Below, one piece after another: positions 12,606 to 22,784 of a stretch of DNA of 64,000 nucleotides. The number at the start of each line of letters is the position of its first letter. Within the stretch, counting starts at the first letter, position 1. The notes under the pieces were generated by a model that was not told the DNA's origin, made no database searches, and saw only the letters and a program-made list of their open reading frames with translations. The DNA is from Ascoidea asiatica JCM 7603 (Eukaryota > Fungi > Ascomycota). Location: NCBI GenBank assembly GCA_001600695.1, contig BCKQ01000006.1:1050483-1114482 (forward strand). The letters are read 5' to 3'. The translations under genes and the position numbers were made by a program.

Positions 12606-13997
12606 CTACCATAAAGCTGCTGGAGTATAAACAGGAATAGCTACAGTAATACCATAACCTGTGGTTCCAACGGCCCATGCTGGTTTTGTTGGTTGAGTCC
12701 ATCCACTTGGTGAAGATGTAATAGTTGAAGAATGAGTGTATGTAGTTGTGTCAGTTCCTGTAGAAATACCATATCCACTACCATAAACATTTTGGTAAAT
12801 ATCAATCATATAATTTTTAACATATGCTGAATCTTTGTAAAAACTGAAATCTTCAACAGTAATATCGGATGGTAAAATATAATCACTACCTCTAATGAAA
12901 ACACCACTTCTAATTTGTTTAGTAGCACTTGAAGAAATTGCTGCAATTGATCCGCTAAAATTAGAAAATGTTAAACCACTAAGAGCAACAGCTCCTGAAG
13001 TTCCTGAAGAATTTTCCCAATATTGATTAATACTCAATCCATAACCTGTTTGATATCCATGAAAATTTTCGAAAAGACAATTTTTAACTGTTGAATCAGA
13101 TCCACCTGGATATGTTTTAATAAACATTAATTGATTTGTATAATATGAATTAACATTTCTAACATGCATATATGATATATCTGCATCTGATTTTAATGAT
13201 CCAATGGACATTCCATCCGCATTATTACAAATCATATTCTCAATTAATCCATGATGTGAAGGTGATTTAATTGAAACACATTCATCTTTATTAGTAACTT
13301 CACAATCATGAATATAATAATTTTTACCTGTGACATCAATACCATCAGTACCTCCTCTATTTGGTCCTCTGATTGTAAGATGATAAACTTCAACATTTTC
13401 AACACTATTCAAAACGAGATGAAAGGTTCTTGAATCAATTATAAATAAGTCATGAACTGCAGAATTTGTCATTCCTGTGATTCTTATTAATCTTGAAGCA
13501 CTAGCAACATATCCATTTGCTGCTCTATATTTATAACCATTACCTTGGATAGCACCTTTACCATTTGAGGAATACATTTCAAAATTATCAACATTTGCAA
13601 TTCTTATCATATCACTATGAGTAACAGTACCTGCACTATTTTTTTGATTGAAATCTCCATCATTATCAATATCAATCAAACCATCAATTTGAAATGCCCA
13701 ATTATCAACATTTGTTAATGCTAAATAGCTTGATAATTTCCAAGTTCCTTCAGGAATATATAATCTAGAATTTGATGTCTTTGCAACACAGCTGGTAAAT
13801 GCTTTATTGACTGCTGATGAAATATCACTTCCTGAAACCGCACCATAATCTGTAATATCACAAACTGTACTTTTCTCAGCTAATGTGGTTGTTGGACCAA
13901 CAGTTCCTGATAATCCATAAGTTTCACTTCTTTCTAAAATTTCAAGTGAAAAGGCTGTAGTAGCCAAAATTGAAAAAGTTAAAATACGATTTAACAT
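12606..13997 (-). CDS. Secreted GH28 rhamnogalacturonan hydrolase (RhgA-like)
   Basis: Signal peptide; LSGTVGPTT...VCDITDYGA N-terminus; catalytic region GGTDGIDV...EVTNKDECVSIKSP (the DE pair marks rhamnogalacturonases, vs DD in polygalacturonases); beta-helix repeats; intronless. Confidence 0.9.
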   Translation of the reverse strand: MLNRILTFSILATTAFSLEILERSETYGLSGTVGPTTTLAEKSTVCDITDYGAVSGSDISSAVNKAFTSCVAKTSNSRLYIPEGTWKLSSYLALTNVDNWAFQIDGLIDIDNDGDFNQKNSAGTVTHSDMIRIANVDNFEMYSSNGKGAIQGNGYKYRAANGYVASASRLIRITGMTNSAVHDLFIIDSRTFHLVLNSVENVEVYHLTIRGPNRGGTDGIDVTGKNYYIHDCEVTNKDECVSIKSPSHHGLIENMICNNADGMSIGSLKSDADISYMHVRNVNSYYTNQLMFIKTYPGGSDSTVKNCLFENFHGYQTGYGLSINQYWENSSGTSGAVALSGLTFSNFSGSIAAISSSATKQIRSGVFIRGSDYILPSDITVEDFSFYKDSAYVKNYMIDIYQNVYGSGYGISTGTDTTTYTHSSTITSSPSGWTQPTKPAWAVGTTGYGITVAIPVYTPAALW

Positions 13998-16612
13998 TCT
14001 AGAACTGAATAAAAAATTTAAGTAAAGGAGTGAATAAATGAATGTTTTTTTTTAACTTAGTCTAGTAATAATTGAACTTACTATAATATATTCAATTTCA
14101 ATCAAAAATCTAAATTTTAGTTGACCATTTCATTTGCTTTTATATAAAAAAAAAATAAATACCTTAATTAAATCATTTGACTTTATCTTTGGATTTACCA
14201 TAATTCTCTTTTGAATGTTTGCGTAAGTTAGTAAAACACATTAACATTTGGTATTGATATTTCAATTGTTTTATTATTATTAATAAAATCATAAACTCCA
14301 AAAACACCAATTTTAAAATATTCTCATAATGATTATTAGAGATTATTAACCCTGAAATTATCAATACTAATATTATTCATTTCATTCTTTTTCATTATTT
14401 AAGCGTAAAGTTATCATTATTTTCACCTCTCATTAAAAACAGGGAGAAATACAGAAGTTTCTATAATAAATTACAATAATTAAAAAGTTATAACTTTGGG
14501 GTGACATATTTTATAATTTAATGAAAGTCAAATCATTTTTCTTAAACTCTAACGTAACATTACTGTATCAGTTTCATCTACTTAGCGTTACAAGCCGTTT
14601 TCATAATTTTCTGAAACATCAAATAGAAGTTCTGATGCTTTAATCAAATATTTCAAATATTCTCAAGAAAAGTTGTTGGTTTATTTTGACAATCATTCTG
14701 ATTTCAATGAAAGCTCTAATATTCAAAGCACAGAAATAAAAAATGCCAATATTCAATTATCTCTTTTTTTCCCATCAACTGGAACCTAATAAAATATTGA
14801 ATAAAGAAATGTAATTCCAATAAAAAAATTTAAATTTTCAAATAGTTGTTTTCATGGAATTCAAAGTGAATCTATAAGGAGATTTTTTTTTAAAAAAAGG
14901 AATTGATCTTCCGCGTAGTATCTTTGCATTGCTCGATGTTACCAACATTGTCTCTACCAATAAAAGCATTACAATAAATGCTAGTCAAAAATGAAGATAA
15001 TATCAATTGTAAAATCGTATAAATATGAGAATCTGATATTTAAATCAATAAGTCTGCTCTATCTTAATTTGAATGGTAAATAAGAAAGAAAGAAATATTA
15101 ATGAAAAAATGTAAAAAGAAGAATGCTCAACAAAGCAATACTGAAAAGGCATTTTTCGACTAATTTATTCTTAATGCTTATAAGTATTTTCAATTCTCTT
15201 GGACACAAGATTGTAAGTTGCTTAAAGGTAAATATTTTTTAAAATTAATATCTTTATTTCAATTTTTGTGGAAGGACTTCGCCTAACTCAAAAAAATTCA
15301 AATAATTCTGTCATAGATAAAACTCAATTACTCCTAAACAATACATTAAATTTAATTTTTATTGCTTTAAAACTTAGGTATGATATGATAAGGAATATAA
15401 ACTAATCGTAATATTACGAATAAAAATTTGCTTCAGTTATTCTAATGACTGGATTATCGTATTTATAAATGTTTTGCCTTTTTTTAAAGCTATTGGGAAC
15501 CATATTTAAAACTAAAATACATGATATTAAGGATAATGTAACCTTTGCTTCTGATTAATAAGTTTGATATTAATAAAAAATAATTCTATTGAGTTAAAGT
15601 GTATTTTCACTTGCTTTATCGTTTTTAAAAAAATAAATAAATTTAGAAACGAAAAGTAAATTGAATTGTTCGAACTCTTTTCGATAATTGATTAATGACT
15701 TTTGACTATTTGATCACCTATTAAATAACTAAATATTGCAAGAGTAGTAGTATTTTCAAATTCTAAATGAGGTTTCTCATTCTGGATTTACCTCAGATAA
15801 TACAAAAAAATTTTTCTCTCTTAAGGATCAAAAAATACTATTGTAGAGTGATAAAATATTATCAGAATTTCGTATGAGAGTGGGCTATTGATCCTAATCG
15901 CGATTCCTACCAGTATAACTTCAAATCAAAATCAAAAAAAAAACAGAAAATCTTAGATTTAAGCTTTTATATATTCCTTTAGAATTATGAAAGAATTGTT
16001 TTAAGGATCAAACATAGCTCAACAAAACTGATCCCCATCTTACTAAGATACAGTAGAATGCAGTAACTTAACAAATAAAAATATCATTATTATTGTCAAT
16101 ATTTTGTATTTTCTTGAAAAAGCTGTTGATATTATTTGCTTCTAGGACCGATTTCGGAAAAAAATGTTTTGTTTGAAAACCGAATTCTGTAAAATAACAA
16201 CAAAGAAACTGAATTTAGAAGTCTTTTATTCTTTCTGATTCAATATTTCAATACTCAAGGAAAGCTTGAGTTAAAGTTTTTGTTTCGTAATTGTATTATT
16301 GTTTTTCAGGAGGCTTTGAAAACGCAGCTCCTACTAATATTATTAAGAGCATCCATAATTATGGTATCCAATAGTGATCTTATTGAGACCAGAAGTTCTT
16401 AATAGATATTTTTGAATCATTATTTCACTTGACAGACTATGAATAATTGTATTTTTAATCTGAGAGTTATGAGAGTTAAGTATTTGTTTGCCCGGAAATT
16501 CAAAAGAAATATTGTATAAATATAAAGGCCATTCAGTTATGGTTATAATAAAATGAAGTTTTTAAACAAATAACCTATTGAATATCAATAAAAAAAAAAA
16601 TAAATCGAAATT

Positions 16613-17635
16613 ATGAAATTTTCAATTGTTTCCATAACAGCTTTTTCTGTTTTACTTCAAAGGTCTTTAGCAGACACTTGCGCTGCAAATTATTATCAAT
16701 GTGGTGGTAAAAGTTGGACTGGTGCTACTTGTTGTAATTCTGGTTTCACTTGCGTTGTTGTCAATGATTACTATTCACAATGTCAAGAAGGAGGTGATAG
16801 TGACGATACAACTTCTGCAGCAGTCATAAGTTCTTCAGTTTCTTCAACTTCTCAAGAAGCGGTGACTAGCCTTTCAACATCTTCTGCTGCTGAAGTATCG
16901 ATTGCCAGTGATGATGTAGTTGAAGCGGCTGCAGTTTCCACATCTTCAACTAGTTCAAGCACTAGCTTTACTGTTTTCCCTGGTGGAAAATCTGGAAAAA
17001 CAACAACCAGTCGTTATTGGGATTGTTGCAAAGTAACTTGTGCTTGGTCTGGATACATGAACTCTAGTGCTCCTATAAGATCTTGTAAAGCTGATGGGGT
17101 AACAACAATTGATGATAACACTCAAAGTGGTTGTGTTGGTGGGGATGCTTATATGTGCTCGGATCAAGCTCCATGGGCGGTTACTGATAATTTGGCATAC
17201 GGGTTTGTTGCAGCAGCTGTAATGGGTGGAGATCAGGCTTCAGAATGCTGTGCTTGTTATCATTTGAAATTCACTTCGAGTTATTTTAGTGGTAAAGAAA
17301 TGGTTGTTCAAATCACTAATACTGGAAGTGAAGGTGATGATTTGACGGAAAGTAACTTTGAATTACAAATTCCAGGTGGTGGTGTTGGTTATTATACTGA
17401 AGGTTGTGCAACTCAATGGGATACATCTGTAAGTGGATGGGGTGAACAGTATGGTGGTGTTGATTCTGAATCAGAATGTTCTGAATTACCTAGTGCCTTG
17501 CAAGATGGTTGTGATTGGAGATGGGATTGGATGGATGGTGCTTCTAATCCAGATGCCACTTATGAAAGAGTTGTTTGTCCTACCGAAATCACTGATGTTT
17601 CAAAATGTATCAGAGATGATGAAGCCGATCTATAA
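16613..17635 (+). CDS. Secreted CBM1 - Ser/Thr linker - GH45 endo-beta-1,4-glucanase-family protein
   Basis: Signal peptide; CBM1 [13 protein letters not shown]...NDYYSQC; S/T-rich linker; GH45 motifs [31 protein letters not shown]. Confidence 0.95.
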
Positions 17636-21104: not shown

Positions 21105-22784
21105 TTAATGTCCATGTGGATCTTCTTTTGGTGGTTCTGGATCAACTGTGATCATTGTATCAATTCTTAAAATGGCAATACAAGCTTCGACTGCTGATTT
21201 TAAACTTTTGATTTTACTAACAGTTGGCTCTAAAACTCCATGTATAGTTTCATCTTGAAGTTTACCTTTGATTAATTCAAGACCATAATTTTTGTAATTT
21301 TTTCTTTTTAAATCTGTAGGTAATGCACTTTGACTAGCTGCATGGTAGCTTCTTAATTTTGCAACCAATTCTGATGAATCTTTAGCTGCATTTTTGGCTA
21401 ATGTTTTAGGTATAACTAATAACGAGTTAGCAAATTCAGCAATAGCTAATTGTTCTCTTGATCCAACTGTAGTTGCAAAATTTTCTAAATAAATATTTAA
21501 AGCAGTTTCAACTGCTCCACCTCCTGGAACTACATTTCCACTTTCTAATGTTCTTTTAACAACTGATAATGAATCGTGCAAAGATCTTTCCATTTCATCT
21601 AAAGAATAATCATTTGGTCCTCTTAATATTATAGATGATGATGAATGTTTTTCTGTATCATTAATCACAATACATTCATCATCAGAGATTCTTATTTGCT
21701 CAACGGATTTTGCATGACCTAAATAACTACTTTCAAAAGTTTCATCTCCTTCAAGATTTGACATTGATGTAATGAAGGTGGCCCCTGTTGCTCTTGCAAT
21801 TCTTCTTAAATCTTCTTTTTTACAACGTCTAACTCCCATACAATTATTTTCAACAAATTCCTTAAGACATAAATCATCTATACCTTTTGTAGTTAAAATA
21901 ACATTGGCACCTGCATTGATGATTTTTTGAATTCTTTCAATAATAATTCCATATTCTCTTTTTCTGATTTCTTCCAATTGTTCTGGATCTTCGATATTGA
22001 TTTGAACACCTAATGACATTTTTTGTTTCTGTAAATTAAGATCTAAGATTGCAATTTTGGCATTGTTTATAACTTTTGGCATGGCTTGCGATGCAACTGT
22101 ACAATTTAACGCATATCCATTAACTAAAAAAGATTCTTTGGATGACTTACCATGAGCTTTTAGAATATTGACAGCCTTTATTGGATATTTGATTTCACCT
22201 TTTCCATTTGTAGTTTTTACTGCTAAAATTGCTTCAACAACCATTTTACTGAAAAAATCAGAATCTGATCCAATTATTTTTGAGGACATTGAAGTTTTAG
22301 CAATATTAATTAATGTATTAGTTCCTAAATTAGAAACTGGTTGAGACAAAACTTCATTGATATATCTTATAGCTTCTCTTAAAGCTAACCTATATCCAGT
22401 TATAATAGTGGTTGGATGAATTTTATTATTAACTAATTCATTAGCTCTCTTAAGTAATTCAGAAGCTATTATTACAACAGAGGTTGTACCATCACCAACT
22501 TCTTTATCTTGTTGTTGAGCCAATTCCACAAGAATTGTACCTGCCGGATGTTGAACATCTAACAATGATAAAATTGTTGCACCATCATTTGTAACAGTAA
22601 CATCACCGATATCATCTACCAACATTTTATCCAATCCAACTGGTCCTAGAGAAGATTTTATGACATTTGAAATTGCTTGGGTTGCTAAAACATTTTGATT
22701 TCTTATATCACTACCTGAAATTTTTTCACCTCCAAGAAATAATGTATCCGATCTAATTGTAGAAAACATTTGCTGAGATGACAT
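21105..22784 (-). CDS. TCP1: Chaperonin CCT subunit alpha
   Basis: [46 protein letters not shown]; C-terminal EPPKEDPH. Confidence 0.98.

Follow-up and report, generated by a model that had tools for sequence, protein, structure and literature searches.

A GH45 protein of the budding yeast Ascoidea asiatica with glutamate in place of the catalytic aspartate

The GH45 gene and its surroundings

The stretch of DNA analyzed here (hereinafter, the window) comprises 64,000 nucleotides of contig BCKQ01000006.1 of Ascoidea asiatica JCM 7603, a budding yeast with a 20.3 Mb genome of ~28% GC. It contains a complete gene for a protein of glycoside hydrolase family 45 (GH45) and, as its divergently transcribed neighbor, a gene of the pectinase family GH28. 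The main features, with positions counted from the first nucleotide of the window and the evidence for each in brackets, are as follows.

12606..13997, minus strand: GH28 (pectinase-family) gene (Pfam PF00295, 97.8 bits)
16515..16526, plus strand: TATA-like element TATAAATATAAA, ~98 bp 5' of the ATG, of putative function (read from the sequence)
16613..17635, plus strand: coding sequence of the GH45 gene, complete and intronless, 340 amino acids plus stop (list of open reading frames, Pfam)
16613..16672, plus strand: predicted signal peptide, the first 20 residues (the N-terminus is hydrophobic and precedes the mature CBM1; inspection of the translation)
16691..16774, plus strand: CBM1, fungal cellulose-binding module, residues 27-54 (Pfam PF00734)
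16784..16984, plus strand: linker rich in Ser, Thr and Ala, approximately residues 58-124 (composition of the translation)
17006..17608, plus strand: GH45 subfamily A catalytic domain, residues 132-332 (Pfam PF02015)

Both recognizable domains score far above the respective Pfam cut-offs. The CBM1 reaches 45.5 bits against a cut-off of 20.6 and, in a HMMER search of solved proteins, can be aligned to the CBM1 of Cel7A and of Neurospora Cel45A. The catalytic domain reaches 226.7 bits against a cut-off of 27, covers positions 4-213 of the 214 profile positions, and matches the springtail enzyme 5H4U, of solved structure (HMMER, E = 2.9e-72). All 14 family cysteines, which occupy invariant or near-invariant columns, are present, in agreement with the preliminary description of this locus. 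With its signal peptide, its CBM1, a linker open to O-glycosylation, and a catalytic domain of GH45 subfamily A, the predicted product is best explained as a secreted, modular glycoside hydrolase that acts on plant cell walls.

The unusual codons of the gene discussed below are not assembly errors because the contigs assembled from the read sets of two independent studies show 0 differences from the window over positions 16500-17530; in particular, an error at the Glu250 codon is ruled out. The gene contains no CTG codon, so that its translation is independent of the CUG reassignment in yeasts. In all three read sets, a short stretch of 53 nucleotides near the 3' end (17501-17553) shows approximately twofold k-mer depth, and contigs break there. 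It corresponds to the block of amino acids 295-314, which is 95% identical at the nucleotide level to a paralogue on contig C28 and may be a local gene-conversion patch.

The GH28 and GH45 genes are arranged head-to-head, with a 2.6-kb intergenic region between them, and may represent a gene pair directed at the primary cell wall (pectin plus xyloglucan). GH12 is one of the usual fungal xyloglucanase families, and no match to its profile (PF01670) was detected in the whole genome. We regard the GH28 neighbor and the absence of GH12 as weak contextual hints to a role in hemicellulose degradation. The paralogue on contig C28 is flanked by housekeeping genes only (Dis3, sorting nexin). Farther downstream in the window, the orthologue of CCT1/TCP-1 alpha (21105-22784, minus strand) is 83-86% identical to its best named matches, which come from Pachysolen, Babjeviella, Wickerhamomyces and Saccharomycopsis; with at most 86% identity in this protein, the yeast belongs to an isolated lineage, to which the protein collection offers no close relatives.

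The catalytic site and the predicted fold

Subfamily A enzymes of GH45 are inverting hydrolases in which Asp10 activates the water molecule and Asp121 protonates the glycosidic oxygen. The Asp that serves as acid in the HFD motif is, to our knowledge, generally taken as invariant. These assignments of acid (Asp121) and base (Asp10) refer to the numbering of Humicola EGV (PMC5829257; PMC6509783), and the corresponding residues of the yeast protein, all encoded on the plus strand, are the following.

17009..17011: Ser133 (AGT), equivalent to Thr6 of Humicola Cel45A (HMMER, MAFFT, codon check)
17021..17023: Asp137 (GAT), the catalytic base (Asp10), kept within SRYWD (the RYWD column is invariant)
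17318..17356: lid loop, residues 236-248, with the insert E240-G241-D242, D243 as the equivalent of Asp114 and N248 as the equivalent of His119 (HMMER, MAFFT)
17330..17332: Glu240 (GAA) (codon check)
17354..17356: Asn248 (AAC), equivalent to His119 (HMMER, MAFFT, codon check)
17360..17362: Glu250 (GAA), equivalent to the catalytic acid Asp121, by which the HFD motif becomes NFE (ungapped alignment)

The preliminary description had proposed that the base Asp is intact and that the acid Asp is replaced by Glu250, and both assignments hold. The strand around Glu250 aligns without gaps to HFDLMIPGGGVG, HFDINMPGGGVG and QFDIAMPGGGVG (HMMER; 5H4U, 6MVI, 5GLX, 5GLY), the acid motif being HFD or QFD in all solved subfamily A structures aligned to Glu250, and the residue falls into the acid column of both MAFFT alignments, of 127 and 65 rows. 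Given this ungapped strand, xF[D/E]xxxPGGGVG, Glu250 corresponds to Asp121, the catalytic acid. A carboxylate is retained at this site, and the weevil enzymes with Glu at the same position are counted as active GH45s, so that the yeast protein is a variant of subfamily A, with Glu in place of Asp at the acid position, and not a non-member.

The fold of the catalytic domain was predicted with AlphaFold (AF2) from a 62-sequence alignment, yielding a confident model (pLDDT 90.6, pTM 0.89) in which the lid loop is the weakest block (pLDDT ~74) and Glu250 lies in a strand spanning positions E123-128 of the domain (pLDDT ~93). In Foldseek comparisons, ten solved chains of subfamily A gave TM scores of 0.90-0.93 and rmsd of 1.2-1.9 A, with 0.92-0.93 and 1.2-1.4 A for 5H4U, 5GLY, 6MVJ and 3ENG; for subfamily B and C structures and expansins, the TM scores were just 0.27-0.42. 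The domain is accordingly modeled with the subfamily A fold, a double-psi beta-barrel with long groove-forming loops. One candidate for the acid that had been raised earlier, an Asp of the adjacent EGDD sequence, is unlikely to take the place of Glu250: EGDD belongs to the loop, whereas Glu250 is in the conserved, confidently modeled strand xFxxxxPGGGVG.

Of the four catalytic-site changes originally reported, three are borne out, namely Ser133, Asn248 and Glu250. The fourth, in which TNTGGD was read as TNTGSE and Glu240 as the replacement of Asp114, is unsupported and most likely reflects an alignment slip. In both the HMMER and the MAFFT alignments, the lid loop contains an insert of three residues, E240-G241-D242, behind which Asp114 pairs with D243 ('DL' to 'DL'), and nothing speaks for Glu240 in particular; Asp114 is therefore most likely kept as D243, its equivalent in three dimensions being uncertain in a loop modeled with a pLDDT of ~74. 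The change of His119 to Asn is real but carries less weight than was given to it. Members of the family naturally differ at position 119 (H 67, Q 51, S 11, N 8 among 150 representatives, in 159 aligned stretches including the two yeast genes), so that this change alone is weak evidence. Of the 120 top homologues, 8 have Ser at the position of Thr6: five of the weevil clade with Glu, two of a chrysomelid xyloglucanase-type clade and one other. In the GH45 literature searched, we found no confirmation of the roles in positioning the acid that had been assigned to Thr6 and His119.

When set against the canonical members of subfamily A, which include Humicola insolens EGV (2ENG/4ENG) and the enzymes of Thielavia terrestris (5GLY), Neurospora (6MVJ) and the springtail Cryptopygus (5H4U), the yeast protein shares the fold, 42-49% identity in the Foldseek structural alignments, the base Asp10, the 14 cysteines and the PGGGVG turn, and can be expected to share the inverting mechanism. 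It differs from them in NFE for HFD/QFD, in Ser for Thr6, in the three-residue insert of the lid loop, and in a change of Ile131-Phe132 to Tyr-Tyr accompanied by one inserted residue.

Glu at the acid position proved to be rare. Six of the 120 top homologues carry it, all of them weevil proteins with the motif NIE, from the genera Rhynchophorus, Anthonomus, Sitophilus and Ceutorhynchus. It was found in none of the 150 representatives of 50%-identity clusters retrieved by an exhaustive search of 1.84 billion proteins and in none of 80 metagenome relatives. Across the ~350 relatives surveyed, then, the residue is confined to these six weevil proteins and to the sister paralogue on contig C28, a rarity that exceeds chance. 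No closer orthologue with Glu was detected outside the yeast's own genome: the best matches were 58-59% identical in a word-index search, 57% in the exhaustive search of 1.84 billion representatives, and 56% among metagenome contigs. A fungal GH45 of this type, or the biochemistry of one, is not described in the papers searched.

The GH45 family of the genome and selection on the Glu-type pair

The genome encodes eight GH45 proteins (loci L001-L008), an unusually large cellulase family for a member of Saccharomycotina. All eight genes are intronless and have the same CBM1-linker-GH45 architecture. Their locations are as follows.

Contig C7: 639477-640070 and 690991-691584
Contig C22: 23251-23844 and 28474-29067
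Contig C28: 42329-42928 (L007)
Contigs C19, C6 (the gene in the window) and C11: one locus each

The acid motif is QFD in five of these genes, KFD in one, NFE in the window gene and QFE in L007. The two copies with Glu (hereinafter, Glu-type) have TSRYWD around the base, and the six copies with Asp (Asp-type) have TTRYWD. The same intronless architecture, with a signal peptide ahead of an N-terminal CBM1 and a Ser/Thr linker, is found in the CBM1-containing GH45s of yeasts and Mucorales (Geotrichum, Ambrosiozyma, and Rhizopus of the RCE type), which together with the Asp-type paralogues belong to the same yeast clade in phylogenetic trees and differ from the Glu-type pair by Asp as the acid residue and by TTRYWD, both without exception. 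Two further features of the family are worth recording. The genes of the C22 pair are inverted, lie ~4.6 kb apart and have nearly identical catalytic domains (dS 0.07), and the C11 copy, with its KFD motif, forms a long branch.

The window gene and L007 are 79% identical over the domain and are clearly under purifying selection, with dN/dS of 0.30 at dS 0.55, compared with 0.12-0.22 for the Asp-type copies. Residues 235-254 are the most diverged window between the two (68% nucleotide and 58% amino acid identity), and nonetheless the GAA codon at the acid position is retained in both. Since it is the surroundings of this shared codon that are most diverged, recent gene conversion is ruled out as the source of Glu in the two paralogues, and the retention of Glu is not a conversion artefact. 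The lid loop itself is diversifying between the paralogues. In L007, it contains no acidic residue, and Ser/Gln occupy the position of Asp114; judging from the sequence, this loss could weaken catalysis in that protein.

These observations bear on the original suggestion that the window gene has been remodeled and is not in decay, and they support it. The reading frame is intact, Asp137 and the 14 cysteines are kept, the fold is confidently modeled, independent reads yield the identical sequence, and the value of 0.30 for dN/dS speaks for continued constraint. In addition, Ser6 and Glu121 are both kept in the second paralogue, in spite of strong divergence of the loop around them.

Proposed function and the origin of the glutamate

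The substitution of Glu for Asp121, together with a functional read-out, has already been published for weevils. In Sitophilus oryzae, the GH45 proteins SOR3-5, which carry this change, degrade xyloglucan but not cellulose, the precedent to which the preliminary description had correctly pointed (Busch et al. 2019, PMC6509783). According to the same study, Glu121 is present in all Curculionidae members of the SOR3-5 clade whereas its Brentidae members keep Asp, and most chrysomelid xyloglucanases have Glu in place of Asp114.

In our judgment, the yeast protein is somewhat more probably than otherwise an active hydrolase in which the acid Asp has been changed to Glu and the specificity has shifted away from unsubstituted cellulose toward a beta-1,4-glucan of substituted or mixed type, with Glu probably acquired independently of the weevils. 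Under this scenario, Asp137 would remain the general base and Glu250 would act as the general acid, so that the catalytic machinery would be preserved but its geometry altered. The acid carboxylate would be borne on a side chain longer by one methylene and flanked by the smaller Ser133 (in place of Thr6) and by Asn248 (in place of His or Gln119), and the lid loop that closes over the substrate is three residues longer and more acidic. The proton donor would thus be displaced relative to the groove that binds the backbone, which would be compatible with a substituted beta-1,4-glucan backbone held differently, and the CBM1 could anchor the enzyme to the cellulose-xyloglucan network. The Glu state would have arisen once in the yeast lineage, before the duplication that gave rise to the window gene and the C28 copy, and would then have been maintained by purifying selection. 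By analogy with the weevil enzymes, xyloglucan would be the likeliest substrate, a more specific proposal that we advance tentatively and with slightly less than even confidence; glucomannan and mixed-linkage glucan are the alternatives. Sequence comparison offers little help on this point, given that just six columns discriminate xyloglucanase-type from cellulase-type beetle sequences, too few to score specificity. A shift in specificity has to be reconciled with the conservative nature of the Asp to Glu change, with the retention of the CBM1, and with the dN/dS of the pair, which is higher than that of the canonical paralogues.

GH45 enzymes are in industrial use and are a textbook case of gene transfer from fungi to animals. 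Were the yeast protein shown to act as a xyloglucanase, or as a hemicellulase of another type, it would be the first such GH45 from a fungus, and two lineages would have reached the same few changes (Thr6Ser, His119Asn, Asp121Glu and a longer lid loop), which would provide a simple, testable rule for switching the specificity of GH45. An activity of this type would also account for the way in which a budding yeast that has eight GH45 genes but lacks GH12 handles the cellulose-xyloglucan network.

Of the competing explanations, the one that fares best, although we consider it unlikely, is that the protein is an ordinary GH45 endo-beta-1,4-glucanase in which the changes of Asp to Glu, Thr to Ser and His to Asn are near-neutral, mutually compensating drift. 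All three substitutions are chemically conservative, active enzymes vary (H/Q/S/N) at position 119, the cellulose-binding module is in place, the fold is unchanged at TM scores of 0.92-0.93, and Asp114 is probably kept as D243. What drift does not readily accommodate is that the acid Asp is otherwise invariant in ~340 relatives, that the sole other clade with Glu has lost cellulase and gained xyloglucanase activity (PMC6509783), and that, with six Asp-type paralogues in the same genome, a seventh and an eighth gene with identical activity would be redundant. Should the protein nevertheless prove to be an ordinary cellulase, the Asp to Glu change would be insufficient for the shift reported in weevils.

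Improbable, in our assessment, is a catalytically crippled wall binder resembling expansins or loosenins, in which an acid of the wrong size leaves little or no hydrolytic activity and the wall is bound or loosened by way of the GH45 groove and the CBM1. GH45 domains are structurally related to expansins, with EXPB1 and Phl p 1 among the distant Foldseek matches (PMC5829257), the dN/dS of 0.30 is somewhat raised, and the sister paralogue lacks any carboxylate in the lid loop. All the same, the window protein retains the base Asp137 and the full loop architecture of subfamily A, which are absent from expansin-like proteins, selection on it is still clearly purifying, and hydrolytic activity is documented for weevil enzymes that carry this Glu (PMC6509783).

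The view that the yeast enzyme is a hydrolase of shifted specificity includes an origin of Glu separate from that in weevils, and this part was addressed with two phylogenetic trees, a quick one of 127 rows and a careful one of 65 rows from which the trait columns had been removed. The two yeast Glu-type genes are sisters (support 100/98) and join the Asp-type protein P0002 (94/84) within the clade of yeast CBM1-GH45s. In the 65-row tree, all beetle sequences are set apart from the rest by a branch with 98/100 support, and the beetle GH45s include the weevil Glu clade (100/100) as a nested group. Because the yeast pair groups with other yeast GH45s and the weevil clade with beetle sequences, two origins of Glu, that is, convergence, are favored but not proven. 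The independent evolution suggested in the preliminary description is thus favored by the trees and falls short of formal proof: a joint yeast-weevil Glu clade is not rejected by the AU test, either with the trait columns included (p = 0.465, delta lnL 3.5) or with these columns removed (p = 0.108, delta lnL 17.1).

The comparison of individual residues yields a similar picture. Among the 29 columns that represent signatures of the weevil Glu clade, the window protein matches 6 and L007 matches 5, against a mean of 0.58 and a maximum of 4 for 119 other sequences. The shared signatures lie chiefly at the active site, namely Ser6, Thr15, Asn119 and Glu121 and, in L007, Ser in the column of Asp114, as would be expected for convergence on an active-site solution. 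The remaining 23 of the 29, among them an additional Cys pair and a WGDC insertion, are unshared. With only two lineages carrying the trait, the association between Ser6 and Glu121 is without statistical weight.

The resemblance to the clade 'a' xyloglucanases of Curculionidae (SOR3-SOR5) encompasses the subfamily A fold family, Asp121 to Glu, TSRYWD (Thr6 to Ser), Asn119, a lengthened lid loop, and GVGYYT after the PGGG turn. The differences are extensive as well: identity is only ~52-56%, the weevil proteins possess neither CBM1 nor linker, they have NIE (with Ile, not Phe) and Ser at Asp114, where the yeast protein keeps D243, and the latter falls outside the Curculionidae clade, within the yeast clade, with the beetles split off at 98/100. 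Chrysomelid GH45 xyloglucanases share the extended lid loop, GVGYY and, in some members, Ser6, but they keep Asp121 and change Asp114, whereas the yeast protein aligns in the reverse way, with D243 kept and Asp121 changed.

We consider it very improbable that the Glu-type enzymes of yeast and weevils have a single origin through horizontal transfer of an already specialized enzyme, in either direction, between weevils and a yeast lineage associated with wood or insects, as an event separate from the ancestral fungal-to-beetle transfer: beyond the outcome of the AU test, such a transfer is consistent with rare residues in common outside the dropped trait columns (Thr15, Ala314, Val320) and with the finding that beetle GH45s overall are closest to Saccharomycetales sequences (PMC6509783), but it conflicts with the careful tree and the 17 log-likelihood units by which the joint tree is worse, with the 23 unshared signature columns, with the fungal CBM1-linker architecture of the yeast genes, and with the retention of Asp in Brentidae of the same beetle clade, by which Glu is derived inside weevils (PMC6509783).

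A further resemblance to beetle enzymes follows the PGGG turn. The sequence GVGYYT, at residues 259-261 (~17387-17395), corresponds to a change of Ile131 to Tyr plus one inserted residue; it is also present in L007, L008, P0002 and all 12 of the 12 beetle xyloglucanase-type sequences, and this Tyr is found in only ~3% of the remaining fungal sequences. The feature may identify the fungal lineage that is closest to the donor of the beetle GH45s or, alternatively, be another convergent change in the groove.
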